A program made the position numbers and the translations under genes. A stretch of DNA of 64,000 nucleotides from Mytilus californianus (Eukaryota), in contig NW_026262701.1 of the NCBI RefSeq assembly GCF_021869535.1, forward strand, positions 2,542,001 through 2,606,000, read 5' to 3'. Below the pieces are notes generated by a model. The model searched no databases and was not told the origin of the DNA. It saw nothing but the letters and a program-made list of their open reading frames with translations. Every line of letters begins with the position of its first letter. Position 1 is the stretch's first letter. Shown piece after piece: positions 1,001 to 64,000 of the stretch.

Positions 1001-1564
1001 GATGTGATACAAAGGCAGATATAACTTTTATAGTTGACACATCAGATGATGTGGGGAAAGACAATTTTCAAAAACAGTTATCTTTTTTAAAACAAACTGT
1101 GAACAATATGAAGATAGCGCCGGACAAAACTCAAATAAGTGTTGTGACGTTTAGTTCTGGTGTTTACAACCAGTTCTTTTTAAATGCTTATGCATCAAAG
1201 GCGGATGTGCTAGCCGCGATTGACAGAATTCCTTATATTTCTGGTCGGACGCATACATCCGATGCATTAACTTACGTCACTCATACGTCATTTAACCCAA
1301 TTCACGGAGCAAGAAGCAATGTTCCTCATATCGGCGTTCTAATAACTGATGGGCCTTCAACGGCCAAGGATTTGACAAAAATTCAGGGACAAGTTGCAAA
1401 GGACAACAATATAATTATGTATGGAGTTGGAGTAGGTTCGGGAATAGATATGGACGAACTGTCCTCAGTAAGCAGCAGTCCAAGTCACAGATATATGTTA
1501 ACAGCAGAAAACTATGGTGCTTTGAATTCACTTTCAAGTTCATTGTCGACGAAGTTGTGCAATG
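1001..1564 (+). CDS. Exon 1: VWA domain 1
   Basis: tgtcag|GATGT...AATG|gtaaga; ADITFIVDTSDDVG...GRTHT...VLITDG, a typical VWA fold pattern; 564 nt, phase 1-1. Confidence 0.95.
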
Positions 1565-4500
1565 GTAAGATATAACACAATTCCTGTTATAAGATTACGA
1601 AACTGTTTTACGATCTCTTTTCACAGTAGTTTGTACACCAGATAAAACAATTTTTTATTCAAGTCTTACCACATAGAAGACGCTTCAAACAAAATACATA
1701 AAGAGGTGCGTCTAATTTAACTGGTATTGACTTTCATATTAGGGTCAAAATCCAAAAGTTGGTATCAATATCTTTCAGAATATTAAATATTATGAGTTTT
1801 AATGTATAACTTAAGGATTTTTCATCTATAGCAATGCTATTATCCGCTGCATACATGGCTGTTGCTGGTGAAGATAAATTTGATACATGGATGCAAATTT
1901 ATATGTTTTCGTAAAATTTAGTTTCCTTCATATTCAGTTGTTTGATAAAAACTCAAACAATCTCTCGAATCTTTCTTTGCAGTTTGCAGTTTTGTGCCTT
2001 TTTAAGCATTTGTAATTTGTTTACATCTTCAAAAGTACGACAAAATTTTATTAGAACCTCAAGTCTTTCTTAAAATAGACCTGAAGTGAAAATATGAGGA
2101 AATGTGTCCCACATTGCACCAGTAAGATGATGTTTAATAAGAAACAATCTAAAAGAAATTGTAGGAGGTGACAGCTATGTTTATTTGTAAGAATGTACTA
2201 GTATATATTTTTGCGCCCGCATGTGGCAGGTGTGCTCGGCTCCAGTCTTAATTGGCTAAGATTGTCAGATTTACTGCCGATTATCGGTAATTCTCTCCGC
2301 GCACTCCGGCTTCCTTCGCCAACAAGAATTGACTGCCACGAATAGTGCTGAAAGAGGCGTTAAACAACAATCAATCAATCAATATATTTTTACAGTTATC
2401 AAATTAGATTATTGGATTTTAAGACAAGGATTTTGATCCCTGAATAAAAGTACTCGTTTGTCAACATTTCAAGAACTGCAAACCATGCTTGTTGGTCGTT
2501 TATTGCTTAATCGTTGGGACATACGCCACATGTACACTGCTAGAAAATCACACAATCACTTTGTTTTCTGATAGTTTTATCAATGTTAATTTAATTTAAA
2601 TTTTAATTTCATAAGCTCTGGTGTTATTGACAGTGATTACAAATAGGTTAAAGAATTTAATGTTACCTTTCAGAGTTGCCATCAAATCCAAATCAACTGC
2701 CACCTCCAACATGTAAGTATGTCACGTGACACAATCATCAAACTGGTTCAAACTTAAAGTCGTACGGCCCGAACATGCATGAAATAGTTGCCACTGGACG
2801 TTTAGCAATCAATCAATCAAACAAATCTGAATATGGAAACGTTGAGATATATTCCAGACTTAAAATCTGTTCAATATGACAATAGCATATCTCTTTACGT
2901 AGAAAAAAGTACCAAGCATAAGGTACATGCATGCAGTATTATTTGATGCATTTCAAAGTAAACTTTATTTTTGTAAATTAAATAGTTTCCACAAAAAAGG
3001 AGGCGGAAAATACCATGGGCATATTTAAAACTCATAAGTCCAACATCTGATAAAAAAAATATTCATCATGGCATAATGAGTTTTCTATTAGCAATTTAGT
3101 TTTTGTCAGATTTTAGTATTAAGAATATTGTTATCTATTTACATATTAAACTTTCTTTGGGTTTTACTTTCAACGGTTTAAGAGGTCAAATTAAGCAGCA
3201 GATATAGCCATTATTCTTTATAACTTTTTTTTGAATTTATTTTCCTTTTGTTCTCATGTTGAGTTGTTTTTGTACTTTAGTCTTTGTTTGTTGGTATAAC
3301 AAAGATAAACATAAAAACAAATACGTGTTTGAATTCATGAAAATAATAGATAAGAAAGACTAGACAGGCTTTTGCGTCATAAAACATCTTGACATTTTAT
3401 TCTTATCACACCCTAGATATTACAACATTCTTTTACACCACAAATGTGTTTGTTTTTGCATATATTTTTATTTTGTTTTTTTCAAATGCTTACTAGGTCT
3501 GTATGTTTCTAATATATTTTTATCTCATCTGTTTGGTATATATTAACATTACTAGATTAAAATATAACTTTACGAGTTTTTTTGTTGATTTTTTAAAAAT
3601 ATATTCTGAACAACTTTTTGCCTTAGCTATATAAATTACTTTCTGTTTGTTTAACGTTTCCAATTCATTTCAAAGTTTCCGCTTTGTCATTTTCATTATT
3701 GCACAATCGTTGTATATAATTTTAGAGGCAATGTACAGTTATCAACTATTTTCTTTACTTGAACCAAGCTACTGAAAAGTATACGACTGAGTCAAAACAT
3801 TATTATTGAAATAATGTCAAAAGTTAAGTGCAATAAGTTTAAAATCTATGGATATTTTTGTCGAAAATATAAAAACTTATATTTTTTGAAGTTTTTTTTT
3901 CATATTCCATTTCAGCATGCTTGCATAAAGCCGATCTTGCTTTTCTGGTTGATTCCTCGTCGAGTGTTGGTTCAGGAAACTTTCAGAAACTAGAAAACTT
4001 TTTGAAAAATGCCGTCACAAAGCTTGACATCGGGAAAGATAAAGTACATGTTGGATTAATGCAATACAGCAGTTATCCTTCTATGCAGTTTCCACTTAAC
4101 ATGTATACAAACAGAGGGGACACACTAAAAGCCATTGAAGGGATGCAATTCATGGGTGGTGACACTAATACAGGAGATGCAATACAGAACATGCGCCAAC
4201 AAATGTTCTCTCAAACCGGTGGCGCAAGAAACAACGTTCCTCGCATTGCCATTGTAGTGACCGACGGCGGTTCTTCTAATAATGCAAAAACTACACAACA
4301 AGCCGATGGTGCCAGACGTGATCACATTGGTCTGATATCTGTAGGTGTTGGGTCAGCTGTCAACTCCTATGAACTTCAGCTCATTGCTGATGATCAGACA
4401 AAGGTCGTCAAGGTCAATAGCTTTGACCAGTTAGAGCAAGCAGTGGATCAGATTCTTCAGAAAGCATGTACTGGTAACTATAATGTTTATCTTTTTTAAA

Positions 4501-7500
4501 CTGCAAAGTTATATACATATATATGTATATAAACAGACTATCGATATGTCTTTATGTTTATTATGATTAAATGCTAATCAATTTTGTTCTTTTGAATGTA
4601 TGATTACTTAATCAGTAACTCGCTGTTGAATAAGAATAATAATTTGTTTTTCCTTTATTATACTATGACCAAAGTCTGATTTTTCCAAAAAGCTAAATGC
4701 GCCCTAAATGTAAAAAGTATTATAACTTTTACCTAATGATGATTGGTTACCTTGTGTATCTTTATTTTATAGTTCAGTCAACAGTAGCACCAACAACAGC
4801 AGGTAATTCTATGTTTATTCGTTTAAATCCATGAACATCATTATTATTGAAATAACTTCGTCATTCATATATTCATGTATCATGCATTTGAAGAAACTGG
4901 TTCGCATGTATTTTTTAACGACTTCAGAAAATAAAACATTGAACTTGTTATTATATACATATTATGGTCTTTTACATTTCGAAGTTCTAACCCTTCATAA
5001 TTGTGACTTTCTTAAGTTTTGGTTACATCCGAACCTGGTGAATGCCAATTGACTGCAGCGAAATTTTGCCATGTCAGTTCCGATGCCTGATATGACCGCT
5101 TATAGTGCATCTCGTGGAATTTTATGGATGAAAAGCAATATAAAGTTATACGATTGAGCAATATTCAGTTAAAGTTGTATGCACGACGTGCTATTACTTT
5201 ATATGTGCATGAACGACAGGAACTTAAAATGGCCAATGTACCAAGCTAACAATATGTTTATACAATGATGAATTTGACATTCATCTTAAAAGTACATGAT
5301 CGATTGAAGTACGAACAAAATACTGAGTCTGAAATGATGATAAACTGATACATCATATTCCATATTAGTTCCGATAACACACTGAGCTAGATATGAGATC
5401 CTTGATTAACGTCATGGGTAGAAGAAAAATGATGTGATGAGCGCTCCTGTCTTTTCGATCAACATCGACTCGGGTCTGTTAATATCATCTTGCACGGGTC
5501 TACATGGGAGATTGGTACGTGAAACGAGTAAAACAGATGTTGACAGATATTGAACTATCATAAACAAATTTTAAGAAGTTTATATCATTTATTCTTTAAA
5601 GAAATTATCTATCTATTGAAATTGAATCCAGTCGCCAATATCAACGCATCAAACAAATTCCTTGCTACTTAGTGGCCAATATTTGCTTTTCCAATATTTT
5701 GAAAATTGAAAAGTAAAAATACGACTTTCTTTATAGCATTAGGTTTGGGATTTCGTAAACTACCATCATCCAAAAATTTAAGATTAAAAGTTTATTACTT
5801 CCTCGTGAAATACTCTCGGTGAACTCATTCCGTCATAGTGTAACCTTATTTGAATATATAACTAATAGACCAATTACTAAATGAACCGAATGATGGTGTG
5901 ACAAGTTTTTATTCACTTCAATTTAGAATAATAGCCATTTTTATGATGTATGCTCAATCAAAGCTTAAGGTCTTTTTTACACAAATAAAACAAACCAGCT
6001 TGAGGGATTTATATGAAAATGCACATTAAATTTGCGATAACAAGTAATTATGTTGTAACTATAGAGACTATAAAAGAAAAAAAACGTGTATAAACTATTT
6101 CAGGAGCTACCAGTGCGCCTACAGCTTGTCAAAATAAACTAAATAACTGCAATTCTTATGGACTGTCTGTGTGTACACAATATCAACCATGGGCCAAGGA
6201 TAACTGTCAAGAGTACTGTGGTTTCTGTGTTAGTAAGTGTCTTCATTTATAAATATGTTTTAATTGTGAGAATAGCAAACTTATGGTTTTCTGTGCTTTA
6301 CTTATAAAACTATCTCTCTTTATTCATAAATTTGAATAAGTATGAATTGAATTAAAGTATGAATTGTACGGTATATAGTTTTCTATGTTGTGATGTTATA
6401 CTTTTGTTTCAGAAAAGGGAGAAGGTTTGGTACCATTAAAACGTTTAATCCCGCTGCAAATGTTTGCACCTGTCCTAGGTCAGGAATCTGATTACAGTAG
6501 TTGTCGTCTGTTTATGTAGTTCATACGTGTTTCTCGTTTCTCGTTTTTATATAGATTAGACCGTTAGTTTTTCCGTATGAATGGTTTTACACTAGTAATT
6601 TTTTTGGGGCCCTTTATAGCTTGCTGTTCGGTGTGAGCCAATGCTCCGTGTTGAAGGCCGTACCTTGACCTATAATGATTTACTTTTATAAATTGTAACT
6701 TGGATGGAGAGTTGTCTCATTGGCACTCATACGACATCTTCCTATATCTATATAAAGTATAAATGAAGAGATATGATTTTAATAACTTGATCCATTTCTT
6801 CTGCAGCACCTAAACCAACATGTGTAGATAAATTAACAAACTGCTTTGCCTATGGTAAATCATCTTGTACACAATATTCAGAGTGGGCACACCAAAATTG
6901 TCAACAATACTGTGGATTCTGTGGTATGTTATTAATTCTTATGGAACTTATTGTCTGGAAATACGGGAAATGACATTGTTATACATATATAACCCAAACT
7001 CAATACCATATGTAACAAACAGTTGCAACTTTCTTTTGCAAAACTTTTTAAAATGTTCGTGAAAGTCATACTAAGAATTTCGATAATGAATATTAAGTTA
7101 AGTGGTGGCATGAATATAATGGTCAGAGAACTATGCCGTCGGAGTAAATTGAGTAAAAAGCTAATGTGTTAAGTTTAAACATTGACTTTGACGGGACTCT
7201 ACTTTTGATGGTACGGATCAAAAATTTGTTTGAACGGAAAAATAACTTTGACAATCAATAATTAATATCTGATCATTGATATTAATCTATATGTTGTTTT
7301 TTTTTTTTCACAGCTGCAGCCGCTGTTACGTCAGGATTTTGTAAGTGACATTTTTCTTGTACATTATGTGGCTTTGAAATATTCAGTTTCAATGAAATAA
7401 CTGTTCGTATGCCGGTAATTTCAATATTTAAATTTTTTTTATGATAGGGACTTTTAAAGTTATTCTGATATAAGTCTTAAAACGCAATATATACAAATCT

Positions 7501-19500: not shown

Positions 19501-22500
19501 TTGTATGTTCCTTGGATGTTCAAGATTTGTTGATCTAAAAAAGGAAATAATAAAGTATTCATGGTTCTGTTTATGTTGATTCTGTATATTTCTTAAATTG
19601 AAATATTCAGATCATGTGCATAGACAGTGAACTCAATTCACACACAGGGACTGAAATTAACTAACATTATAAAGGCAGCATTTAGTCATGTTGTTTAAAA
19701 TATTAAAGCAAAAGGAAGCAACATTCTGACATTTTTTGGAAACTGGAAATATGACTTTATTTTACTTTTTACTGTGCACTTTTAATTAATTGTAAATTGC
19801 TTTTTAAATCAAAAAGAGGGATGCCATATTTTACAAAACATATAATTTATGAGTAACAGCTTTAACAATACAAATATGATTTTGTGTTTGTAGATGTATG
19901 TGTTTACAAAGGGAAGCAGTATTTCCAGAGACAAACATGGAGAGATGGATGTGATCAGATATGTATGTGTACTAATTCATCCAAGGGTTTATATCAGTGT
20001 GAATCAATGTAAGTTGTTAGCATTATCAGTCAGGGGACTTATTGAAATAAGTGATTTTTAAATCACTTATTTAAGTAGCAAATTCTAAGTTTTGTCACAA
20101 ATTGTGATTTTGTAGTTTTACCAAAATTTTAAACACATAGGTTTAGATAATATCTTTTCATTAGTAAAATTGAAAAAAAATGAACTTTTTGCTTCTTTTA
20201 AGCAGCAAGGTTTATGCCTTTGATTCAATCATTTAGCTGCAAATTCTATTTTAGTTGAAAAAATGCTATAAAAATGGCTTTACATAATGAACTGATACTT
20301 TCTTAACAGATTTTTCCCAGCAGTGGGAGTATTTTTCCTGTAAAATTCAAGGTTTCATCTTATAGATTATGTAATAAAATTCTACTGTTCGCGATCAAAA
20401 TTTCACTGTTTGGGGGTGTTGAAATTAGTGGAGGTTATTAAAATAATGATACTTAAAGAAGTGATTTTTTGGAAGGAAATTCAGGTATAATACTTAAACA
20501 AGTGATTTTTATGTCATTATCCTAGATTTAGTACAAGGTCATCACCTGACATGACCCGGTCATCCTATTAACACAGATGTTGGTTCTGATAATTTTAGCA
20601 ACATAATTAGTCCCTGGATCATTAGTATTCTATATTTAAAGCTACAATAAAATTAAATCACTTAGTCTAGTGATTAATTTGTACTACTTAAATAAGTGAT
20701 TATTAAAGAAAGACAACTCTTACTTCCAACCTTTATGGACATAAATATAATGTTACTTGAATCAATGATTTAGAAAATCACTCATTTAAGTAAGTCCCCT
20801 GACTGATTATACCAACTCATTCGTATACATTGTAAATTAGTATACCCCCTGCAAAGAAAAGTTGGGGGTGGTATATAGAAATCACTCTGTCTGTCAAGGC
20901 AAGTCATGTATATATGGTTACAAAATGCAACAGAAAACAACAAATGAATTGAGCAACAATGAACATTGTACAGAATTTGGGTGAACTGTTGTGTTAATGG
21001 AAGGAAAGACAGTTTTGACTGCATTTATTAATTTCTTTCAGATGTCCTAAATATAACAGTATTCCTGCTAACTGTCACATGAACACAGCACCAGGGGAGT
21101 GCTGTCAGAAACCTGCATGTGAATTTCATCAGCAGCATGGTAGTTTTACAGGACAAGGCTCAATCAGTGGCACTGGTGTTGGTTTGTATAATTTATTTTA
21201 TTGTTCAAAATTTTGTGTAGAGCCAGATATTTGACACTTTTTGTTGAATGTAATGTCTTTATATAGGTACATTTGACAGTTCTGGGATGTCATATGATTA
21301 GACTGAGTATTTTTGATCCTCATATAATTTACATTAACCTTAGAATTCATTTAGGGTTTCTTTGACAATTACCTTTTTTGTCACAATAAAAATATCAGTA
21401 AACAACAATAATTATATATGTTTTTTCATATTAAAAATAAAATTTCTGATACATGTGGATTGAAAATTTGCTGCATTACAGAAAAGTCAGACAGTAAATA
21501 TATTACATCATAAAAAGATATGCTCATGTATTGGTCCTTCACATAGAAATTGTGCTTTACTGAAAAGGTTGTGTTTAAAAGATTAATCACTTTTGAGATA
21601 CATGAAGGAGGCCTGAAAAGCAGAGGGAGTACAAACTAGTTTTTTTGTTGTAACTTACAGCATGATATAGTGCCTGCATAAATAAACATTTATTTTCTTG
21701 TTTATCTTTTTTTTTTTACTTTATGAAGTATGGGAGGGAAGTAAAACCAAATAAAAAATCAACTTTGTATCATTAAAAACATACAAGTATACATCAAATA
21801 TTATCAACCTCATGCAAAAGACTTAAAGGCTGTTCCTTTGAAATATACATGGGACAGAGGAAAGGCACTTGGAAATCTCAACTATGGGTGGGTGTTTAAA
21901 ACTTTTTTTTGTACAGTGAAAATGTAATTTAGAATCTAAAATGCCTCAATAGTTGTTACTCCCATTTTTAAAGTGCCTTCCCAGGGTACCATGTATGTTT
22001 TAGTAAAAAAATAATACTGAATATATGTACATATAAAATTGTGTATTTTTGTGACAGGTTTGAAGCCAACCACACAGAAGCCATGTGTAGATGCTGTCGG
22101 TACTTGTTCACAGTATGGTAAAGATGTTTGTACAACATACAGTGGCTGGGCTGGGGACAACTGTAGAAAGTTCTGTAATTTATGTGGTTAGTAGATAAAG
22201 CATTGTGATGGAATAAACATTAAATTTAATTCACTTAACTAGTGAAGGAATTTAATTCCTAATGAATTTTGTATGTAATGGAAAAACATGATTTATATAT
22301 TGAGGAGGTAATATCTACAGGTTACCTGACAGAATGCTTCTGTTTATCTAAAGTTTAATTTAACAGTAAAGATTTAAAGATTGCATTAGAATAGGATTAA
22401 TCATATTGTATTTTAATACTTGTCTAAAGTCAATTGTAGATATATAGTTGCCTTGAACACATTCAATGACTAAAAGCAACAATTGATGTAGACAAGTAAA

Positions 22501-46500: not shown

Positions 46501-49500
46501 TTTGATCGCTACACATCTTCCACTTTGTTAGATCAGCAGTAAGTCATTAATGACCGTACCATTTCAGATAACAACTATCATTTAACATTTTATTACCTTT
46601 TGACACTAAAAGGATTTCTATTTCTAACTAATAAATGATTTCAGGTGTCCAAAGTTTGTAGACATTCCTAAAGAATGTACACTGACCCGAGATTACCAAA
46701 ATCCTTGTTGTATGAAGGTTAAATGTCAACCATCATTGATCCCATCACCAGGACCTAATGCCTCACCAACCCCTGCTGGTAAGATACTACAGATTTTATT
46801 CTTATGGTGAAGGATTTCCGGTATCACAGGAATTAGTAGGCATAATTTGATCAGATTTACTACAAAGAAAAAAACTTGAAGCACCTTGTGGATAATTGAA
46901 TATATCATGTTAGTGGAAAAGTCCTCGCAATGTACAAAATCTCTCAAGTTAAAATTAGAAATGGAAAGGTTCTAATGATGATATTGATAAAATAAGATAT
47001 CAGAAAGTGGTAAGATAATCAAATAAGCTAAACAGTATGCCCCTGATTAATGTTTTCTTCAACAGAGAAAAAATATAAATACTTAAAATCAAGTCATAAA
47101 AACTAAGTAAGCTGCAAATTCTTAGTCAGAAGCATATGGTTCTTTGATTCATATAGGCAACACTTTTATAGCTGACTATGCGGTATGGGCTTTGCTGATT
47201 GTTGAAGGCCGTACATGCAGTGACCTATATTTGTTAATTTCTGTGTCATTTGGTCTCTTCTGAAGAGTTGTCTCAATGGCAATCATCCCACATCTAATTT
47301 TTATAACTCAATTGCAAGTCCACTACACACAAGAAATAAGGGGGAAAAAAGTCCATTTCACAAATTTGTTGGAGGCAAAATCATTCTATTAAAATTGACT
47401 TGAGCGGGTAGAAAGGGACTTTAAAATTTCTTTGAAAACCAGCATACTGTGAATAATACTGCATAAATTATAAGAACTTACAACTATAAATGACTTTTGA
47501 TACATGTCCTAAAATAAAACTTCTATTCCCACTTCTCAAATTCATTTTTACTGGAAAAGCCTTCAACATGTGTGAAAACAAAATTAAAATTTACAAATGA
47601 AGACTATGCTATTTTATATTATTTTTTTCAGCATTAAATTATCAGCAGTGTAAATAAATTTTGTTTATAAGTTATTTACAGTATAGAAAAATATGTAATG
47701 AGAGATATGTAATTTTGTTTAAAGGTCAATGTATGTATAATGGTGTACCATTTAACGAAGGACAGACATGGAATGATGGATGTGATCTAAGATGTTCCTG
47801 TGAGAATGGCACCACAGGGTATTACAGATGCAGTGATAGGTATGTAGTTTGGTGGAACTAAATGCATGTGTACCCTTTTTATGCTTTTGAATTATGGTTA
47901 CTTCACAAACTAATTTTAGCATGTTGTATAAAATGTCATTTGCCTAAATCCCACTCTTGGTCACAATAAATACTATAACAAAACAGGACAGATAAGAATG
48001 TTTTTCTATTATTTCATTTATAAAGATGATATACATGTATCAGGGTTTTTTAATGTTCTAATTTACATAACTTACAAAAAATTAAGAGAATTGAAGAGCT
48101 AAGAAGTAAATACAAAGCAAATCCAATCAAAATATTTCTTTAAGGTGGTACTTAACACTACAGGGAGATAACTCTGTAAAAATCAGTTGAACGTTTTAAT
48201 CACATTCTATTTTTAAGAAAATGTAAAGCTTCTCAATGATCAAAATAAGTGTTTGTCAAACTGCTATATATCCAATGTAATTTTTCCGATAAAGTGTGTG
48301 GTTCAAGTATTTTGAAATTTTCATATTTTGTTCAAAGGTCAAATTAAATATTTTGTCAAAATTTTATGAAAATTAAACGAGCCAAATTAATTTTAGTCAA
48401 GGTGTTTGGTACAACCTTAAATGAGTGAATATATTATGTTTTAGATGTGCTAAGTATCCAAATATTCCAAGCTACTGCACAATGGAGACTGATCCAAATG
48501 ATCAGTGCTGTATGAAACCAAGGTGTCAACCAGCACCTGCTACAACAGTTATACCTACAATATCACCATATCTTACACCAGGACCAGGTGTGACTTACCC
48601 ACCAAACAAGGTACCAACTCAGTATCCAGGTCAAACATTTGCACCTGGGAAAGCACCAACACTTGAACCATTCAAACCATACCCACCTGGACTTCAGCCA
48701 ACTATGTCACCTTTATTGACACCAGGTCCTGGTTATACCTATCCACCAGGAAAAGTACCAACACAATATCCAGGACAAACATTTCTACCAGGCAAAGCAC
48801 CAACATTGGCACCATATAAACCATTCCCACCAGATCTGCAACCAACAGCATCACCATTTCTAACACCTGGCCCAGGCTACACTTATCCTCCAGGAAAAGT
48901 CCCAACTCAGTATCCTGGACAAACATTCAAACCAGGAAAGGAACCTACATTGTCACCCAACAAACCTTTCCCTCCAGATTTGTTACCAACAATGTCACCA
49001 TATTTGACACCAGGAGTAGGTTACACATATCCACCCGGTAGAGTCCCAACTCAGTATCCAGGACAAACTTTCCCTCCAGGAAAAGAGCCAACATTATCTC
49101 CATACAAACCGTTCCCACCAAATTTGAGACCAACAATGTCACCTTATAGAACTCCAGGTCCAGGATATACATACCCACCTGGGAAAGTTCCACCTACCAG
49201 TTTCCCTGGAGAGATACCAACTTTGTCACCATTCAAACCATTCCCACCAGATCTTCTGCCGACTTTAGCTCCTTATTTGACACCAGGACCAGGCTACACT
49301 TATCCACCAGGAAAAGTACCACCAACCAGTTATCCTGGAGAAATTCCAACTCTTCCTCCATACAAACCATTCCCAAAAGGACTAGAACCAACATTGTCAC
49401 CGTACCTAACACCAGGACCAGGCTATACATATCCACCAGGCAGAGTTCCAACTCAATATCCAGGACAGACCTTTCAACCTGGGAAGGAACCAACTCTGGC

Positions 49501-52500
49501 TCCAAACAAGCCTTTCCCTCCTGGACTGATGCCTACAATGGGACCTTATAGAACACCAGGACCAGGCTACACCTATCCCCCAGGAAAAGTACCACCTACA
49601 AGTTTCCCTGGTGAAATTCCAACTCTGTCACCATATCAAACATTCCCACCAGATCTTTTGCCAACACAGTCACCATACTTAACACCTGGACCAGGTTACA
49701 CCTACCCACGAGGGAAAGTACCAACAGAGTATCCAGGGCAGACATTTGCCCCAGGAAAGGAACCAACTCTTGCTCCAAACAAACCATTTCCACCAGGACT
49801 TGGACCAACTTTGTCACCATACCTCACTCCAGGACCAGGCTACACATACCCCCCAGGTAGGTACACATATCTACTTACTTTGTTCCTTTATGGCCCAGCT
49901 TAGGTAAAGGGAAAAACTAACAAAGCATTCCCACCAGGACTTTGACCAATTTATCACCATACCTGACTCCAGGACCAGGGTACACATACCCAACAGGTAG
50001 GTACACATATCTACTTACATTGTACCTTCATGACCTGGCTTAGGTAAAAGGAAAAACAAACAAAGAAAAAAGAAAGTGGGGGTAATTTCAGTCATCTGAC
50101 AATTAGAATGTACAATTCACTATTTACCAACAAATAAACAAAAGATATATCAAAAGTAAAGAATTTTGTAAATGGCAGCATATGATGAAGATATATCATG
50201 CAATAATATCATGCTTAACTTTAAATAAATGTATTTTCAGGGAGAGTACCAACACAGTACCCAGGACAAACCTTCCAACCAGGGAAAGAACCAACTCTGT
50301 CACCATATAAACCTTTCCCACCAAATCTTCTACCAACAATGGGGCCATATTTGACACCAGGACCCGGATACACATATCCACCTGGAAAGGTTCCACCAAC
50401 CAGTTACCCTGGAGAGATACCAACTTTATCACCTTACAAACCATTCCCACCTGACCTCATGCCAACACAGGCACCTTACATTACACCAGGACCAGGGTAT
50501 ACCTACCCACCAGGAAAAGTGCCAACACAGTATCCAGGTCAAACATATAAACCAGGGCATGCACCAACATTAGCACCTAATAAACCTTTTCCACCAGATT
50601 TGTTGCCAACACAGGCACCATATTTGACACCTGGCTATGGCTACACATATCCTCAGGGTTATAAGATACCTACACAGTTTCCAGGACAGACTTTCCCTCC
50701 AGGACAGATACCTACATTAGAACCAAATAAACCATTTCCGCCAGGACTTGGACCAACTCTATCACCTTATTTAACACCAGGACCAGGATATACTTATCCT
50801 TCTGGACAGGTACCTCCAACCAGGTATCCTGGAGAAATACCAACACTAGCACCATATAAGCCATTCCCACCAGGACTGGGTCCAACGATTTCTCCATATC
50901 TGACACCAGGACCAGGGTATACATATCCACTTGGAAAAGTACCAACACAATATCCTGGACAGACCTTCCAACCAGGAAAGGAACCAACATTGCCACCATA
51001 TAAACCATTTCCTACAGGATTATTGCCAACATTGTCACCATTATTAACCCCTGGACCAGATTACACATATCCACCAGGGAAAGTGCCAACACAGTATCCT
51101 GGACAGACATTTGCTCCAGGGAAGGAACCAACATTATCACCATATCAGACATTCCCTCCTGGTCTCAGGCCAACAATGTCTCCATATCTAACACCAGGGC
51201 CAGGAGTTACCTATCCACCAGGAAAAGTACCAACTCAATACCCAGGACAGACATACCAACCTGGCAAGGAACCAACATTGGTACCTAATCTTCCATATCC
51301 TAGCTATTTGTTACCAACAAGAAGTCCATATCGAACACCAGGACCAGGCTACACTTACCCACCAGGAAAAGTTCCACCAACCAAATTCCCAGGAGAGATT
51401 CCGACACTGTCACCATACAAACCTTTCCCAACAGATTTGTTGCCAACAGCTTCACCATACTTGACACCAGGACCAGGCTACACATACCCACCTGGGAAAG
51501 TTCCACCAACCAGTTTCCCTGGAGAGATACCAACTTTGTCACCATTCAAACCATTCCCACCAGATCTTCTGCCAACAGTTGCACCGTATCTGACACCAGG
51601 CCCAGGCTACACTTATCCCCCTGGTAAAGTCCCAACTCAGTATCCAGGCCAAACATTCCAACCTGGGAAAGAACCAACTTTATCCCCTGACAAGCCTTTT
51701 CCTCCAGGTCTTCTGCCAACAGTTAGACCATATTTCACTCCAGGACCAGGCTACACATACCCACCAGGGAAGGTTCCAACTCAGTATCCAGGCCAAACAT
51801 TTGCTCCAGGAAAGGAACCAACTCTTGCTCCAAACAAACCATTTCCACCAGGACTTGGACCTACTTTGTCACCATACCTCACACCAGGACCAGGCTACAC
51901 ATACCCACCAGGAAAAGTTCCACCAACCAGATTCCCAGGAGAGATACCAACATTATCACCATACAAACCTTTCCCACCAGATTTGTTGCCAACAGCTTCA
52001 CCATACTTGACACCAGGACCAGGCTACACTTATCCTAAAGGAAAAGTCCCAACACAGTATCCTGGACAAACATTCCAACCAGGAAAGGAACCTACACTCC
52101 AACCGGACAAACCATTTCCTCCAGATCTACTACCAACAGTAGCTCCATACTTTACACCAGGACCGGGCTACACCTACCCTCCAGGAAAAGTACCAACTCA
52201 ATATCCAGGCCAGACATTTGCACCTGGGAAAGCACCAACCCTGCCACCTTGGAATCCATTCCCTCCAGGATTAGGACCAACTCTGTCACCTTATCTTACA
52301 CCAGGACCAGGCTATACATACCCACCAGGAAAGGTTCCACCAACAAAATTCCCAGGAGAGATACCTACACTGTCACCTTACAAACCATTCCCACCAGATC
52401 TGTTACCAACAAAAGCACCCTATTTGACTCCAGGACCAGGGTACACATATCCTAAAGGAAAAGTACCACCAACCAGTTTTCCAGGAGAGATACCAACACT

Positions 52501-55500
52501 AGCACCTTATGAGACTTTTCCACCAGATTTATTACCAACAATCAGGCCTTATTTCACACCAGGACTAGGTTACACATATCCACAAGGAAAAGTACCACCA
52601 ACAAGTTTCCCTGGAGAAATTCCAACATTAGCTCCATACAAACCATTCCCACCAGGACTTGGACCAACTTTGTCTCCATACCTGACTCCTGGACCTGGCT
52701 ACACGTACCCACCAGGAAAGGTCCCACCAACACAGTATCCAGGACAGATTCCTACACTGTCACCATACAAACCATTCCCACCAGGATTAATTCCAACAGC
52801 TTCACCATACCTTACACCTGGACCAGGAGTAACATATCCTCCAGGGAAAGTACCAACACAGTATCCAGGTCAAACATATCCACCAGGACTGGCACCAACA
52901 CTGGCACCTAACAAACCATATCCCCCAGGTCTTTTACCAACACTATCACCATACTTGACACCAGGACCAGGATACACATATCCTCCAGGCAGAGTACCAA
53001 CACAATACCCAGGACAAACTTTCCTTCCAGGAAAAGCACCAACTCTGTCACCATATCAAACTTTCCCACCAGGTCTCCAACCAACATTGTCACCTTATCT
53101 AACCCCAGGACCAGGTTACACATACCCACCAGGAAAAGTTCCACCAACCAATTTCCCTGGAGAGATTCCAACATTGCCACCATATCAACCATTCCCACCA
53201 GATTTGATACCAACTGTCTCCCCTTATAGAACACCAGGACCAGGTTACACTTACCCACCAGGCAAAGTACCACCAACTAGTTATCCAGGAGAAATACCAA
53301 CACTGTCTCCCTACAAACCATTCCCATTGGATCTGTATCCAACAGCATCACCATATCTGACACCAGGACCAGGCTATACATACCCGCCAGGAAAGGTCCC
53401 ACCGACACAATATCCAGGACAGATTCCAACACTGTCTCCATTCAAACCCTTCCCACCAGGTCTGATACCAACTGCCTCACCTTATAGAACACCAGGACCA
53501 GGTTACACTTACCCACCAGGCAAAGTACCACCAACTAGTTATCCAGGAGAAATACCAACACTGTCTCCAAACAAACCATTCCCACCAGATTTATTTCCAA
53601 CCCTTGGTCCTTATGCAACACCAGGACCAGGCTATACCTACCCACCAGGAAAAGTACCACCAACAACTTTCCCAGGAGAGATTCCAACCTTGTCTCCATA
53701 CAAAACATTCCCACCAGATCTCAAGCCTACATTGTCACCATATAGAACACCAGGGCCAGGCTACACGTATCCTCCAGGAAAGGTCCCAACACAATATCCA
53801 GGACAGACTTACCAACCTGGAAAGGAGCCAACTTTGTCACCATACAAACCTTTCCCAACAGACTTGTTGCCAACTATATCACCGTATCTGACACCAGGAC
53901 CAGGTTACACATATCCACTTGGGAAAGTACCAACACAATATCCTGGACAGACATTCCCACCAGGAAAAGAACCAACATTGTCACCATATAAACCATTCCC
54001 ACCTGATCTTCTGCCAACATTAGGTCCATATTTGACTCCAGGACCAGGCTACACTTACCCACCAAATAAGGTACCAACTCAGTATCCAGGTCAAACGTTT
54101 GCACCTGGGAAGGCACCAACATTGTCCCCATACCTTCCCTTCCCACCAGGATTGAGACCAACACCTGGACCAACGAATGCTCCAACCAAGAAGCCTTATT
54201 TAATACCTACGGCCATACCTGGTATCATCACTGGCCAAGGTGTTGGAGTAAACGGAAGTAGGTATTTTAAAAAAGATAATTGGTAATACACAAAATTAAT
54301 TCTGGATAATTTTTAAGTTATTCCATTAGATAATCATGTGATATTATTTTCATCAGGTAATCACACAGAGGAAATCTTGTAATAACATATTCTAATTTAA
54401 TTTTATGGAACAGTTTTTTATATTGGTTAAGATTTACCTTCACAGTTGACATGACTTAGCTAAAAAGTGAGCCACCATATTGAATTGCTTTGATCAACAA
54501 ATGTTTAATTACTACAATATAATCAAAAATAAAACAACACTATCCTCAAAAACAGTATTAAGATGTAATTTAATCCAAATTTGAATAGTAGAAGTAATGT
54601 AATAAACCTTCAGTTTGGTAGTTTTCATTTGTGTGACATCATGTTTGGCCATGACGTTTATGTGCCAAAATCATTCATGAAATTTTGCAGAATTTTATTT
54701 TATTTCAAAAAAAAATTTCTCAAGCTCTAACTTATTATTTTTTGTTGTAATGCATTAGAATCGGAATAACAGTACTGTGGTTGAAGAATTGCCACCATCT
54801 ATTTGGATTTGATGGTCACAAATATCCATTTTACTGACTCCCCTACACATCGCCAGTAAAACTGCATTTGCAACCATTAAATCACCAATTGACGGAGGCA
54901 ACTCTTCGACTACAGTTTTTCCTTAAGTTACGATTTATAGCAGTGTTTTAAATACTGGATGTCTATCTGTCTAGTTTGGTAAGTGCTATCACACATTTCA
55001 ATTCTTGCCATATTTTAGGGAATTTATATGAAAGGAAATATCAGCAATGCTCAGACAAGTTGTAAAATAAGTGCTTAACCATTTTATGCCGCTTGGAAAT
55101 ATTGATTATATGGAAAGATGTATAAGCGCTCTTAAGGGTACATTTCTTGTAGGTTTTTTAGTGAAAGTTGATAATCAAAGGTTTATATCAGCAATATCTC
55201 GATAAATTTGAAAATCAGATTTGATCAATTATTTTTACAGGAGTTATACCCCTTAGAAATAGAAATTTAATGTAAATTTGCATTGTTAAAGATAGGCGAA
55301 AGATACCAAATGAACATTCAAACTCGTTAGTCAAAAATAAACTGACAATGCCATGCCAAAAAACTAAAAAATGATCAAAAGACATTTAGACAAACAACAG
55401 GAAATCATCTAAGCATCTAATTTCATTTAGGATATTTATGGAAATATATTTCACATGATGTTAATACTGTTGATATACTTTTCTTCAAGGGTATCAATTT

Positions 55501-58500
55501 TCCTGGTTTGTGAAAATATTGTCGGTTAACAGTGTTTTAAATTTTTTGTTTTATGATTTACACATTCAAATTCAATGGGAAATATAAATTTAAAAATCTA
55601 GATAAATTGGTACCCCACATATAATCCAGTCAAATTTATAAGTTTTTAGCTTCATGATGGAATTGAGTTATAGGTTACTTTTACTTCATGAAATTGTGAA
55701 ACTATCAAAGAATTTTGAAAGTTTTATTTTTTATTGGGAGAAAATCTTTGAATTGCAAATTTTAGGAAGAGAATGGGAAATAAGGTGTATGAAAATCCAA
55801 TTTCAAGTGGTCCAAAGTCCAAAGACACTGGGAATAATTATAACATCAAACAATAGACCAAATAGATAATGTCGCCTATTCTCATGGTGAAGGCCCTAAT
55901 GTCACCTATTATCATGGTAAAGGCCCTAATGTCACCTATTCTCATGGTAAAGACCCTAATGTCACCTATTCTCATGGTAAAGACGGTAAAGACCCTAATG
56001 TCACCCATTCTCATGGTAAAGACCCTCATGTCACCTATTGTCATGGTAAAGACCCCAATGTCACCTATTATCATGGTAAAGACCCTGATATCACCTATTG
56101 TCATGGTAAAGACCCTAATGTCACCTATTCTCATTGTAAAGACCCTTTTTAGATTATAAAAAGTGATGTTTCACTGCTATGTAATTATATATGTAATTTA
56201 TTGACATGTTTTTCAGAGTCGTGTATGTACAAAGGTGTATCCTATAAGAAGGGAGATAAATGGGAAGATGGATGTCAGTACAAATGTGAATGTATGGATG
56301 ATATGACTGGCAGCTATCAATGCAAAGAAAGGTAACATTTCTGTCTAGTTATAGTCCACACCGTATTTAGTTACTTCCACGTTAATGATGTGCAGTTTGA
56401 ATAGAATTGACGAATCCTTTCTATAATATGATCATACATTGTGCAGACATTTTATTTTTAAATAGTTTGAAATTATAGTCATTTCAAAATATTTTGTTTT
56501 TTATACCCCAGCCTTAAAAAAGTGGGGGTATACTGTTTTACCTCAGTCTGTCCTTCTGTCCATCCATCCCTCCGTCAGTCCGTCCATCCGTCCCATGAAT
56601 ATTTTTCATCGCATTTTTCTCAGAAACTACAATACAAGGATTTCTGAAATTTGGTTTCAGGGTTTATATAAGTTGGCTATACCGTATGATGCATTTTTAG
56701 ATTCATCACTCAACAACTTCCTGAATGAAATATTTGGGTGGTGGTATCATCAGTGAGCAGTAGCTTGCAGTTTCACTTGTTTTTAGTGTGTATGTTTGTT
56801 TTATTTTATGGGATGGAGCTATAGGTTGGGTATAATAAATGTTTTGTGTGTTAAGGCTAGTTCTCTATATGAATAAAGGATATATTACCTCAGAATTGTA
56901 CATAGACACTGATACAACCTTCTGGGGTTTCACAGCGAATGACAAGTTTTTGGCCTCTTGTACTTTCAACATCACCCTTTAAATGGCTTTTGATTAAAAA
57001 AAGAATAAAACACATAAAAAGTCTGTAATGTAAAAACAGTCCTAAGAATAAGATAAAACACATAATTTCCTCCTTTAGGTGAAAAGTCTTACAAATGAAC
57101 TAGCCATTCCTCTCTCAAAATTTGCATATTTTATTAAAGATATAGACCGATTGTTGTTTGCTTTCTTACAAACTTATATGGCAGTAGATACACAATCTAC
57201 CTTAACCCCATATTTGTTAATATTTTATATATAAAAATAAGTAGATGTATGATTGCCAATGAGACATTAACTATCCACTAGAGACCAAATGACTAGGATT
57301 TTAACAACTATAACCAATATTTGACATGCCTTGATAGATTAGTAACACCTGAAGTTGATATAATCAAATCAATGAATATTATCCATAAATGTCCTTTTAA
57401 TGACATTTAGTGTAAAGGGTGTCGGGCTTTTAAAATTGTAAAAGGAACAACAGCACAAAATGCTTAATGAACATCTCATTAATTTTATATTTAAAGTATT
57501 AATATAAACAGTACCATTTTTACTTCACCAGATGCATATTTAGTCAATGTCTCTTCAGTGATGTTGAGTCAATAAAGAGTCATGACAGTTGTATACGCTG
57601 TTCAATAGTCATAATTCGATTAAGCAAAAACATTGGATAATCCAAAACCTAATTCAAGCATTGAAAAGTCAACGAGTGATTTTAAATATGCAATAATATT
57701 ATTTGAAAGATATTGATTCCTTTGAAAAATAAGTTGTTAGTTAACTGTTAGAAATAAAAGACAAATTTGACTGTAAAGTCAGTCTTCAAAAGTGAAAGAA
57801 TTGGTACACATGTATTGTGAAATTAAAAGGCCTATTTATCAAAAACATCAGAAAATCTATATAGTTTTGTTTTATATTAATGTGCCACCTATTTGTTAGT
57901 ATGAATGTGATTTTGAATCTGCATGTACTTTAAATAGAACAAATCAGCATTTAATTCAATAGTCAATTTAAGTAATTCACCACAATGATACATGCATTCT
58001 GTATTACAGGTGTCCAACCTACACAGATATACCAGCCAGCTGTCGACTCACCATTGATCCTAAAGATTCATGTTGTATGGTTCCTTCCTGTGCACAGCCC
58101 ACACCAACACCTGCACCATATTTAGGTCCTAGTACACAAATACCTCCCGTTACAGGTGAGTACTCAGCCATGCTGGACTGACATTAACACTTGCACCATA
58201 TCTAGGTCCTACTACGCAAATACCTCTGATACTGAGCCAACACTGATATATACCTAGGTCTCATTACCCTAATATCTATCTTGACAATTGAGCCACTAGA
58301 TATCTCAAGTTGTAGTTGATTACATACCTACATTGAGCTGTCACCACTTTAAATTTGCACAATATCAAGGTCCTAAGTACTCTGATACCTCTCTATAGAT
58401 TACTCAGCTGCATAAAAAGTTGCAACATATATATATTTTTTTTTTCTAAGCACTTTATATATATATATACAGATATTACTTTTTGAATTATTTCTAGTTG

Positions 58501-61500
58501 TGAATAATAAGAAAATACAAGTTTTAAATTCAACATGGAAAACACAATAGGTGATAACATACTGTGGATTCATTATTATTCGTTGGATACCAATTTTCGT
58601 TGGTTTCGTGGGTACAGGTGAACCACGAAATCAAATGTTCAACGAATATCATATTTTCAATACGCTTTGTATACAGAGATTGGCAATCCACAGTAGATGC
58701 TAACGGTAATTGTGAAGAATTTTGGATCAAAGTTATTGTTTTGATTAACTGTCTACTTGTTACATATTTTCGTTCATTACCCATTCGGAACAAGTCACTG
58801 TTAAGACATCATTTTGAAGCTTCATTTTTGTTATAACTTTGTAACAATATGCACTTGAGTCATTCAAATTATTAATTTCTTCTGGTTTCTCGGGGACTAT
58901 CTATAGTAAAAAGTGATCTATTCATCTCTTATTTAATTCCTAATAATGAATGAACACACAAGTCTTACAATGTCTGATGAAACAATTTAATTTCTGCAGT
59001 ATGGAAAGAAAACTTTGACAATGAAATTGGAAACCAGAACTTTATGCTTTTTGCAAATATTGTAAACAAGACTTCAATTCAGTGTGATGGTTGGTGTTCC
59101 GGTCCTCAGGTGCTCATCAACTTTGAATGGTAGTCTTCATAAACAAAGGAAGTCATTGATTTGTAACTGTGTGCATAGTTGTTAGTATGATTTTTATAAA
59201 ATTTTATGAAAAAAAATATTATTACTGAAAAAAATCTCAAATTACGGAAATCTTGATACTTTTTAACTGATTGCAGGAGGTTGGCATCTAACAGTATTTT
59301 GATTTTACACTTGTAGCCAAACCTGACATCAATGCTTGTTTATACAAGGGTAATGTGTACACCCAGGGACAGAAATGGTACGATGACTGTGACAAAGTAT
59401 GTGTATGTCAAGATGCCAAAATGGGATTTTATAGCTGTCAAGACAGGTAAAATTTTATGTTTTTTTTTTTTTTTTATGTTTTAAAAACTAAAATCTGTAT
59501 TGTAGCAATTTACTGTGTGTCCAAATAATGAATCTCTAAAAACATTTGAGGTTATTCGAATGTACATCATATATATGGTAAGTAAAATTATCATCCTTTA
59601 CCACAGACAAAAAACAACTGATCTGCAAGATTTACCATCACTTGCCGCTATACATCATGTACTGTGTTACAACCTTAGATAAAGCCGACAAAGAAAGGCA
59701 TTACTTGACTAATGAAAGCTATATTTTTATATAGCCTAGTTGGTCTAGTGGTCTATGGAATGAACATAGTGCAAGCGGTGTTGCCACGATGTGTCCGATG
59801 CAGTGATTTGAATCCCTCTGAGGATGACTGCCAATGAGACAAATTTCCAACAGAGACCAACCAACATAACTATTGTTCCATATAGTTTTTCAAAAAGGTC
59901 AAAAACCACACCATATAGCAAGCAATAAAAGACCCTGACATGGAAAATGTAAAACAATTTGAACCTTCACTTGACAAAAATTCATCTGGACTTTACAAAA
60001 AGCGCTGTATAGCTAGCTTTTATTAAGTTATGGATACATTTAGCAAGGACTATTTAATATATGCAATTGAAAGATGTATACAGAGATGATCACATATAAG
60101 GTTCGTAACATGGGGCATCCAAATCAAAATGGTGAGCTGTAACTTGTATTTTATGCTCCTGTTGCTAAGCAAAGGGGGCATTAAGTGTTACCCTTGACAG
60201 TGGGATTTGGGCAGTTAGTAACTTACCGTTCAAGAGTTATCTTGCTCCTTTATAACTTGCAAAATTACAATTTTTCCTTATCCAAATTTTATGAAACTCA
60301 CACAATGCTTAGAACCAAAACTTGCAGACAGAATTGGAACTTGGTAGTGAGTTATCTTGTTAAGTACTTTTTTCAAGAAATTATTAACTCACAAATTTTT
60401 AAAGTTTTTTAAAAAGAACAAACAAAAACAGGCAGCCTTGACCTTAGATAGCATTTACATTTAAATGTCACTTTTGTCGGCCTCAAATATGAGAAAACAG
60501 TACTTATCTTGTTTATATATATTTCAGATGTGCCAAGTACTCTAACCTAGGCCCTAACTGTGTGATGGTACCTGATAGTAGAGACCCACAATGTTGCCAA
60601 GCTCCTGACTGCAACAACAAAAATACAACAAATATCCAAGGTGTACAGGGAACCATAACTGGTACTGGTACTCTGCCTCCACCCACTGTTGTGCCTGGTA
60701 AACCAACAATAGCTCCAAAGGGTAAGTCTATTGTATAAAGGCAACCCTGTACTGATACAATGTTTCATTTAAATATTGTAGCTGAAAAGGGGAGGTCATT
60801 ATCAAAGGTCCGGTTACTTGTATTTTAATTTTCATTAATGATGCTTTTCTACCTAGTAAACAATTTGAAGCTTAACATTAAATATGATACTAAGAAAATG
60901 TGGTATGATTGTCAATGAGACAACTTTCCACTAGATACCAAATGACACAAATTAACAACTATGGGTCATTGTATGGCCTTCAACAATGAGCAAAATCCAT
61001 ACCACATAGTCAGTTTGAAACAGCACCGAAATGACAAATGTCAAATAATTCAAATGAGAAAACTAACAACCTGCTTAATTTACAAAACAATGAGTGAAAA
61101 AGAAATATGAAATACAGCAACAAACAACAACCAATGAATTATAGGCTCTTGACTAGGGGCAGGTACATGCAGAATGGAGTGGGGTTAAACATGATACAGT
61201 TCTCTTTCATGACAGGACTGTAGCTTTTGTTTTGATAACCACAATTTATAAAGAATTAGAACCATCCTACTTTGTGTATAAGTCTATTTGTAACACATAA
61301 TCATGATAATATTTCAATTCAGAATTCACCACAACATTCATGTTATATAGTTTGTATAAGAATTCATTATTATTTTGGTTAGTTTATTCTATATTTGACA
61401 CCTAAAGTCAATTTCAACATTTCAGTCGATATTTGTGGTGATATATCCCTAATATTTGACTGTTGTTGTCAACTTTTATAAAATTCTATGTCAGGTTACC

Positions 61501-63701: not shown

Positions 63702-64000
63702 GTGAGTAGTATACAGGGCACTGTATTTATACAGCCACAACTCAACCCTCCAATTATTGGCAAGAGAGGTGAGTAGTATACAGGGCACTGTATTTATACA
63801 GCCACAACTCAACCCACCAATTATTGGCAAGAGAGGTGAGTAGTATACAGGGCACTGTATTTATACAGCCACAACTCAACCCTTCAATTATTGGCAAGAG
63901 AGGTGAGTAGTATACAGGGCACTGTATTTATACAGCCACAACTCAACCCTCCAATTATTGGCAAGAGAGGTGAGTAGTATACAGGGCACTGTATTTATAC
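63649..64000 (+). repeat. 67-bp tandem repeat (at least 5.3 copies, runs off the window) of the exon 3' end plus donor
   Basis: Units at 63649, 63716, 63783, 63850, 63917, 63984; GTGAGT donors at 63702, 63769, 63836, 63903, 63970. Confidence 0.95.

Follow-up and report, generated by a model that had tools for sequence, protein, structure and literature searches.

A giant gene of Mytilus californianus with VWA, ShK and VWC modules and a sequence-constrained proline/tyrosine rod, a candidate secreted matrix protein of an uncharacterised molluscan family

The principal finding of this work is a giant modular gene on the + strand of a 64,000-nucleotide stretch of Mytilus californianus DNA (hereafter the window, G000:C121:2542001-2606000; a window position plus 2,542,000 gives the position on C121). 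On balance we think it probable that one gene of this Mytilus-type mussel encodes a secreted extracellular-matrix protein, member of a conserved and uncharacterised molluscan family. The whole gene is estimated at ~106 kb and ~5,300 amino acids (aa), the window holding its first two thirds. The order of domains in the window is two VWA domains, two ShK domains, two VWC modules, a third ShK domain, ten further VWC modules, a 1,782-aa rod rich in proline (Pro) and tyrosine (Tyr), and four more VWC modules.

The stop-to-stop frames of the + strand comprise the two VWA domains (~190 aa), short cysteine (Cys)-rich frames and two giants of 492 and 1,353 aa, while outside the rod no open frame in the window exceeds 249 aa (+ strand) or 323 aa (- strand). 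Stops occur elsewhere in the window at 0.064 per codon, a frequency that gives 1,353 successive codons without a stop a chance probability of ~1e-39; therefore, this frame is not attributable to chance. The GC content is ~30-35% over the window and 42-47% at 48-54 kb. Exons were searched one by one and were concatenated only to count stops, length, composition and unit statistics. Joined in this way, the 38 exons of the window amount to 11,523 nt and 3,840 aa, with zero stops, AG/GT at every border and all borders in phase; with 17 downstream exons added, up to the fourth ShK domain, the chain reaches 55 exons and 4,819 aa, still stop-free and with AG/GT throughout. A sequence-only reading of the window had proposed a giant secreted modular protein and a phase-consistent chain of ~3,880 aa, open at both ends; the exon chain confirms the latter, at 3,840 aa, and supports the former.

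The VWA and ShK domains of the window are encoded as follows:

1001..1564, + strand: VWA domain 1, a single exon in phase 1 at both ends (Pfam VWA E 2.8e-41, splice sites)
3916..4473, + strand: VWA domain 2, a single exon (Pfam VWA E 1e-44, splice sites)
6104..6232, + strand: ShK domain 1 (Pfam ShK 21.7 bits, six-Cys pattern, splice sites)
6807..6923, + strand: ShK domain 2 (Pfam ShK 23.0 bits, six Cys, splice sites)
22058..22186, + strand: ShK domain 3 (Pfam ShK 20.4 bits, six-Cys pattern, splice sites)

With 142.1 and 153.3 bits, the two VWA exons exceed the cutoff of 23.8 (PF00092), and they cover profile positions 1-172 and 1-174 of 174. In VWA2 the metal ion-dependent adhesion site is complete (DSSSS, then T in GDTNTGD, then D in VTDG), and in an alignment of both domains the site of VWA1 reads D-T-S-D-D, with Asp at the third position instead of Ser. 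The gathering score of Pfam ShK (PF01549) is 20.9, and the third ShK domain lies marginally under it. The Lys-Tyr dyad of ShK potassium-channel toxins is absent from all three domains, whose residues up to the fourth Cys read WAKDNC, WAHQNC and WAGDNC; judged by these residues, the ShK modules appear to be structural and not toxins.

Each of the 16 VWC modules is split into an N-half and a C-half exon, recognised by Cys pattern and AG/GT sites:

15439-15556 and 18826-18968, + strand: VWC 1 (AG/GT phase-matched; N-half matches Pfam VWC positions 1-36, E 0.012)
19894-20008 and 21042-~21181, + strand: VWC 2 (weak donor choice among 21139, 21175 and 21181)
23926-24040 and 27108-27358, + strand: VWC 3
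27842-27956 and 29655-29935, + strand: VWC 4
30310-30424 and 31109-31254, + strand: VWC 5
32005-32119 and 33321-~33481, + strand: VWC 6 (donor uncertain)
33943-34057 and 36165-~36328, + strand: VWC 7 (donor uncertain)
37399-37513 and 38658-~38875, + strand: VWC 8 (donor uncertain)
39688-39802 and 40403-40575, + strand: VWC 9
42953-43067 and 44660-44898, + strand: VWC 10
45483-45597 and 46645-46778, + strand: VWC 11
47725-47839 and the first 84 nt of 48445-49856 (ending at 48528), + strand: VWC 12, C-half in the same exon as the rod
56217-56331 and 58010-58155, + strand: VWC 13
59317-59446 and 60528-60721, + strand: VWC 14
61831-61945 and 62462-62628, + strand: VWC 15
63138-63252 and 63520-63701, + strand: VWC 16, the gene extending past the window end

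The N-half carries five Cys in the pattern C.Y.G..Y..G..W.DGC...C.C......Y.C and the C-half another five in RCP.Y...P..C.......CC....C, the module consensus across the family being CxYKGxxYxQGxxWxDGC...CC..P.C. The splice geometry is constant: the N-half donor lies 8 nt past the fifth Cys codon (phase 2), the C-half acceptor 1 nt ahead of the sixth, N-half acceptors and C-half donors are all in phase 1, and the same intron positions and phases recur in every split module found. The choice of C-half donor is weak in modules 2, 6, 7 and 8, as well as in module 19, outside the window. The sole unsplit module, located downstream (72425-72709; L006:8355-8792), matches Pfam VWC positions 1-56/57 with 22.9 bits, below the gathering score of 27.6 (PF00093); its AlphaFold model has a pLDDT of 91.7, and its top Foldseek matches in the PDB are the vWC domains of CCN3 (5nb8; E 4.6e-4, TM 0.55/0.59) and collagen IIA (5nir). 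Whole homologues exceed the Pfam VWC threshold (P0014 with 45.5, P0036 with 61.5 and P0090 with 27.7 bits). The predicted structure and its PDB matches indicate that this type of module adopts the VWC fold. The two VWA, three ShK and 16 VWC-like modules of the sequence-only reading were thus all recovered on the + strand, by Pfam, Cys patterns and splice sites.

The rod lies between modules 12 and 13:

48529..49856, + strand: rod part 1, ~443 aa (open frame 48425-49900, phase-1 donor at 49856, RNA contig cover)
49857..50240, + strand: intra-rod intron, 384 nt, GT..AG, a multiple of three (spliced joint in X11 and X16 contigs)
50241..54257, + strand: rod part 2, 4,017 nt, 1,339 codons, phase 1 at both ends (open frame 50225-54283, donor at 54257)

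A single exon (48445-49856) encodes both the C-half of VWC 12 and the first 443 aa of the rod; no splicing is therefore required to link the VWC array to the rod. With 1,782 aa and no Cys, the rod agrees with the Cys-free Tyr/Pro repeat of ~1,800 aa claimed earlier. It is composed of Pro (29.6%), Thr (12.7%), Gly (11.4%), Tyr (9.5%), Leu (8.1%) and Lys (5.2%), among others, and is built from ~38 units of 43 or 48 aa around a near-invariant TPGPGYTYPPGKVP core. The 37 full units that were resolved comprise 17 of 43 aa (PTLSPYLTPGPGYTYPPGKVPPTSFPGEIPTLSPYKPFPPDLL), 19 of 48 aa (...VPTQYPGQTFQPGKEPTLSPYKPFPPGLL) and one of 49 aa. Units are 81-84% identical to each other in protein and 75-78% in DNA, with proportions of synonymous and nonsynonymous differences (pS and pN) of 0.53-0.59 and 0.11-0.13, respectively. 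Since pN/pS is ~0.21 and protein identity exceeds DNA identity, the units are old and have been kept by selection on the protein sequence; they are under purifying selection and constitute neither a young nor a purely compositional repeat. The rod has 35 Tyr-x-Tyr sites and a Y-P-P-G-K motif; its 2P+G value is 0.70, and its computed contour length is ~550 nm if it forms a polyproline-II helix. Short APYLGPS-like motifs recur in the ordinary linkers that follow modules 13 and 15, and from its sequence the rod resembles such a linker in amplified form, a greatly expanded and sequence-constrained relative of the Pro/Gly/Thr-rich stretches between VWC modules. As exon 50241-54257 is in phase 1 at both ends, a hypothetical isoform that skips it would stay in frame, with a rod of ~443 instead of 1,782 aa.

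Across the genome searched (1.65 Gb, 175 contigs), the rod repeat was found only in this gene, in an upstream neighbour described below and at a degenerate locus, C121:2.087-2.094 Mb. At that locus (C121:2087408-2094561), rod-like repeats of 40-79% identity contain many stops inside the matches, and it may be a decayed or intron-rich copy. A word search of a protein library with the 1,353-aa frame returned the orthologue of the neighbour alone. HMMER with the rod against 1.84 billion representatives gave 23 matches, of which only the neighbour's orthologues and a fragment from Tegillarca were real; the bacterial and metagenome matches were rejected as chance Pro/Thr-rich similarity in unrelated domains. 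A full-text search with the rod motif returned no paper, and searches of the shell, byssus and mucus literature with domain words returned nothing specific.

The gene is transcribed and spliced. RNA contigs and reads were placed on window positions 46500-52499, where the rod exons are covered at ~10-fold depth by contigs of two runs, X11 (recorded as RNA) and X16, which leave transposon-free intron stretches uncovered, with the exception of an X11 depth of 12 in the 49900-50099 bin, inside the intra-rod intron. The GT..AG joint 49856>50241 (contig joint 49853>50238, cut +3) is present in both X11 and X16. Raw RNA reads of X21 are thin on the rod, and their first mates lie on the minus strand only, which in most stranded libraries points to + strand RNA. 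The N-half exon of module 12 (47725-47839) has RNA contig depth; zero depth was seen on the C-half exon of module 11 (46645-46778). Runs of a sister species (organism A) hold about half of the 31-mers of the rod, which we estimate to correspond to ~2% divergence. Two intron pieces, 47100-47299 and 48100-48499, are covered very deeply in each of the four runs; with their many loose ends and consistent base differences, they behave as copies of an abundant transcribed repeat element.

Beyond the window the gene continues for ~40 kb with nine VWC modules, three ShK domains, a ~205-aa domain, two VWC modules and a stop, which brings the totals to 27 VWC modules and six ShK domains:

65.2-80.6 kb (window scale), + strand: nine further VWC modules, one of them unsplit
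85.08-89.5 kb (L008:1079-1309, 3551-3724, 4195-4374, ~5445-5510): ~205-aa domain in four exons, conserved, four Cys
93022/94431 and 95748/104024: last two VWC modules, the final exon ending at the stop at ~104,153

The first of the downstream ShK domains shares an exon with the C-half of module 25. The ~205-aa domain separates the ShK triplet from the last two VWC modules, is found in gastropods and bivalves, and carries the motifs MKGVxGV, PGHYKP, VxIYKNGVEKA, GWMxIST and KPAFYYAPG. It had zero Pfam matches, and an Atlas search gave unnamed clusters at 0.85, which is noise level; in the AlphaFold model of P0090 the mean pLDDT is 50, and it is under 65 across this domain. An apparent conserved match at ~86.5 kb was ruled out as an exon, with stops inside it and matches in several frames.

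At the other end, a candidate first exon encoding a signal peptide (MVRRLAGILILVSAITAEILSKRQNSG) lies 2.3 kb before the window, at -2266..-2185, with a phase-1 GAG/GTAAGT donor. In the Mercenaria relative a signal peptide is directly followed by a VWA domain with an NFQKQL motif, as in this gene, which fits the candidate. Two other candidates, at -31 and 731, were dropped for want of a good donor, and upstream of the window no additional VWA frames were found, transposon frames being the only ones.

The placement of this gene in a family comes from protein comparisons. The closest proteins are those of Mytilus galloprovincialis, M. edulis and M. coruscus, and the VWC/ShK part and the ~205-aa domain match a family in bivalves, gastropods and one brachiopod. 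All relatives are computer-predicted models, their domain orders were mapped by regular expressions, and they are named 'uncharacterized' or 'hypothetical' or bear borrowed names, such as collagen alpha-4(VI), SAS-like, CSP-like and, in the brachiopod, mucin-19:

Mercenaria mercenaria LOC123550590 (P0091) and Ruditapes philippinarum LOC132753729 (P0094): VWA x4, ShK x2, VWC x2, ShK, VWC xN
P0088, P0089 and Littorina saxatilis P0038: VWC xN, ShK x3-4, 205-aa domain, VWC x2
Batillaria attramentaria BaRGS_019101 (P0087): VWA, VWC x6, ShK x5, 205-aa domain
Mya arenaria P0034: 'SAS-like', name from its source
Tegillarca granosa KAJ8302509.1 (P0014): fragment with a Pro/Ala/Gly/Tyr stretch of at least 175 aa, then VWC and ShK modules

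These relatives share with our gene the type of modules and their order (VWA, ShK x2, VWC x2, ShK, VWC array, ShK x3, 205-aa domain, VWC x2), but they are without the long Pro/Tyr rod and have linkers of 60-110 aa rich in Gly, Thr, Pro and Ser; Tegillarca alone has a rod-like stretch, in short form, and the venerid clams have four VWA domains plus TSP1. The earlier suggestion that the architecture is not a recognised one holds in that no full-length match to a characterised protein was found, the relatives being unnamed or misnamed; it fails in that the domain order itself recurs in bivalves and gastropods. The order thus seems widespread in molluscs, and what appears distinctive here is the long, sequence-constrained Pro/Tyr rod.

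The models of the closest species also bear on annotation. In M. galloprovincialis, the model P0090 (LOC143080963, 936 aa) aligns colinearly with 73,046-104,144 and shares the stop of our gene; it starts at module 22, and its first 24 residues are unmatched across the 184 kb that we examined. The model of M. edulis, P0092, begins as an out-of-frame reading of the N-half exon of module 22. Both RefSeq models span only the last, 3' third, which indicates that automated annotation fragments the gene, as the sequence-only reading had expected.

Upstream of the gene lies a neighbour related to the rod:

~-47.5 to -26.7 kb, window scale (C121:2494511-2515300; L013-L003): neighbour gene

It encodes a single-pass membrane protein with a signal peptide, a Pro/Tyr repeat as in the rod, one VWC, a transmembrane segment and a short tail, and its orthologues in M. 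galloprovincialis (LOC143080960, XP_076113277.1) and M. edulis (XP_071172351.1) are uncharacterised. Neighbour and giant gene share the repeat motif (LTPGPGYTYPPGKVPTQYPGQT), the type of VWC module and the chromosomal neighbourhood; the neighbour differs in its size of 919-964 aa and its transmembrane segment with short cytoplasmic tail, and is without VWA or ShK.

The 3' order (VWC with ShK, ShK, ShK, ~205-aa domain, VWC, terminal CY.W-type VWC) is kept at two paralogous loci:

C121:73.13 Mb (L015-L016, C121:73127001-73147000): paralogue, ~50-60% identical
2.35-2.39 Mb (L017-L020, C121:2350001-2390000): paralogue, ~90% identical in the exon of the 205-aa domain, its ShK/205-aa part locally duplicated

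The terminal VWC C-half exon has a second copy at 122347-122547 (L011), 18 kb further on. This copy, too, runs into a stop (…CPAWSHIVITYPPGYTEE*); it may be what remains of a duplication or else serve as an alternative last exon.

Six introns open with tandem arrays, with units of 51, 70, 55, 140, 67 and 65/58 bp, each of which duplicates the last bases of the exon plus the GT donor, so that the donor is present many times:

15544-17290, 18899-19389, 23991-24163 (and 26237-26524), 49776-50065 and 63648-64000: donor-copying arrays in the window
~82331-83487, window scale (L007): donor-copying array beyond the window

In the array at the N-half of module 1, the exon frame meets a stop just past the first donor. 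A further repeat, at 2216-2390, has dozens of genomic copies with ~80% identity.

Several points weigh against the reading of one giant gene for a matrix protein. RNA confirms a single junction, the one inside the rod; the expected joint between the two halves of module 12 is unlisted, and one X16 contig has instead a non-canonical joint 47785>48487 with undetermined letters between, which is ambiguous. The link from the VWA/ShK part to the first VWC module (intron 6924-15438) and that from the rod to module 13 fall outside the stretch on which RNA was placed. The first exon is a prediction only. The Met exon that P0090 has of its own at module 22 makes a separate promoter or transcript for the 3' third possible. 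The rod is absent from the annotated proteins of two large libraries, bar the orthologues of the neighbour, which leaves the gene without an independent full-length model; this absence fits a fragmented annotation. Finally, we infer the structural matrix role from domain content and composition.

As for that role, the disulfide-rich beads of VWC and ShK modules and the two VWA domains, of collagen VI/PTMP1 type, could dock the protein to collagen or other matrix partners, while the Cys-free rod, with 30% Pro, might serve as a long extended spacer, possibly an elastic one. Its ~38 regular Tyr-Thr-Tyr and Lys sites are potential targets of hydroxylation, glycosylation or oxidative cross-linking. 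As in mussel proximal thread matrix protein 1 (PTMP1; PDB 4CN8) and the N-terminal VWA domains of collagen VI alpha-3, the VWA domains of our gene have Cys at both ends; they scored 69-82 bits against the domains of PTMP1, and against those of collagen VI the score reached 84 bits (for VWA2, ~82 bits with PTMP1 domain A2 and 84 bits with a collagen VI alpha-3 N-domain). A kinship specific to PTMP1 was rejected, the domains being equally close to vertebrate collagen VI and to the A domains of VWF. PTMP1 differs in consisting of two VWA domains only, and collagen VI in having a triple-helical region, absent from this gene: the exons scanned gave no collagen Pfam match, and the rod units, of 43/48 aa with 11% Gly, are not Gly-X-Y. 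Receptors of the Drosophila Sas (stranded at second) type, which combine VWC and FN3 domains with a transmembrane segment and a cytoplasmic tail, are also distinct, since neither FN3 nor a transmembrane segment was found in this gene, the latter occurring in the neighbour only.

Among the other explanations, the one that survives best, though we hold it to be unlikely, is that of a mucin-like glycoprotein protecting or lubricating the epithelium of gill, mantle or foot, with the rod as a heavily O-glycosylated PTS domain and the neighbour as its tethered form. The rod is Cys-free with 45% Pro+Thr+Ser, and Cys-rich VWC domains flank it as they flank the large PTS domains of gel-forming mucins and VWF. 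The neighbour, with its membrane anchor, resembles a tethered mucin, and the brachiopod relative was automatically named mucin-19. ShK (SXC) domains have a precedent in nematodes, where they flank the mucin cores of Tc-MUC proteins, as cited in PMC7333891. Nevertheless, neither VWD nor CTCK was found in the exons scanned or in homologue models; there were no Pfam matches to VWD-C8-TIL assemblies or a C-terminal cystine knot, and the last module is a VWC-type C-half that ends at the stop. Typical PTS domains are conserved in composition only, whereas conservation in the rod extends to individual positions, Tyr, Gly, Lys, Phe and Leu among them, with the pN/pS given above.

Within the structural reading, a more specific role can be offered as speculation, and we regard it as rather doubtful: the rod might be an animal counterpart of plant extensins, a polyproline-II structure of ~0.5 micrometre whose ~38 evenly spaced Tyr-Thr-Tyr sites, together with nearby Lys and Pro-Pro, would undergo hydroxylation and oxidative cross-linking by tyrosinase or peroxidase. 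The giant VWA/VWC protein would then be a so far overlooked load-bearing part of tanned byssus, periostracum or ligament, and the neighbour, as a paralogue, would tether the material to the secreting epithelium. Plant extensins, with their YxY cross-link motifs, and mussel foot protein 1 (fp-1), with its decapeptide, are likewise Cys-free Pro-rich repeat rods with regular Tyr, but the units here are of 43 or 48 aa as against 5-10 aa, and neither extensins nor fp-1 were among the HMMER matches to the rod.

It is improbable that the chain instead comprises two or more head-to-tail genes or transcripts, for example VWA-ShK, VWC-rod and a 3' part with VWC, ShK and the 205-aa domain. Such a division would suit the single junction confirmed by RNA and the start of P0090, which has a signal peptide behind its own Met; besides, two gene IDs of M. 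galloprovincialis fall between LOC143080960 and LOC143080963, so that the orthologous region may hold several models. All borders are phase-compatible, however, and neither an in-frame stop nor a Met/signal-peptide exon was found at the suspected breaks, while the out-of-frame start of P0092 is the mark of a truncated prediction. Moreover, single models of Mercenaria, Ruditapes and Batillaria unite VWA, ShK and VWC (in Batillaria also the 205-aa domain), those of the two clams being single RefSeq models that share the local order VWA, ShK x2, VWC x2, ShK, VWC xN, and the diverged paralogue at C121:73.13 Mb retains the 3' order.

We give very little credence to a role in regulating BMP/TGF-beta signalling, after the manner of kielin/chordin or crossveinless-2, in which the VWC modules would bind growth factors as chordin-like CR domains do. 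Kielin/KCP is also secreted and has a long tandem array of VWC (CR) domains, of which there are 27 here, and two vWC domains, those of CCN3 and collagen IIA, are among the top structural matches. But no VWD (C-terminal in kielin/KCP/crossveinless-2), TSPN (a domain of kielin) or CHRD was found, VWD and TSPN having zero matches in the exons scanned or in homologue models. The usual Cys spacing of CR domains is C2-xx-C3-x-C4 and CC-xx-C, whereas here it is C2-x3-C3-x-C4 and CC-x4-C, and the 1,782-aa rod, the two VWA and six ShK domains, together with the 205-aa domain, are additions of this gene, rod, VWA and ShK being foreign to known regulators. A decaying or non-functional gene copy, to which many introns packed with transposon pieces and minisatellites might point, is hardly credible in view of 4,819 stop-free codons, rod units under purifying selection and correct splicing in RNA contigs.

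Taking the gene as one that encodes a secreted matrix protein, its significance would lie mainly in the case that the protein resides in byssus, periostracum or a similar material. The byssus, periostracum and shell matrices of mussels are models for underwater adhesives and tough biopolymers, and the inventories of their proteins rely on proteomics searched against annotated gene sets. As the gene is split or partly missing in annotation, a protein of ~5,300 aa would be invisible to such searches, above all its 1,782-aa rod, whose Tyr-rich sequence is of a kind that becomes DOPA-modified or cross-linked. Beyond the mussel itself, the comparison defines a conserved, unnamed family of putative molluscan matrix proteins, including a ~205-aa domain without a Pfam match.

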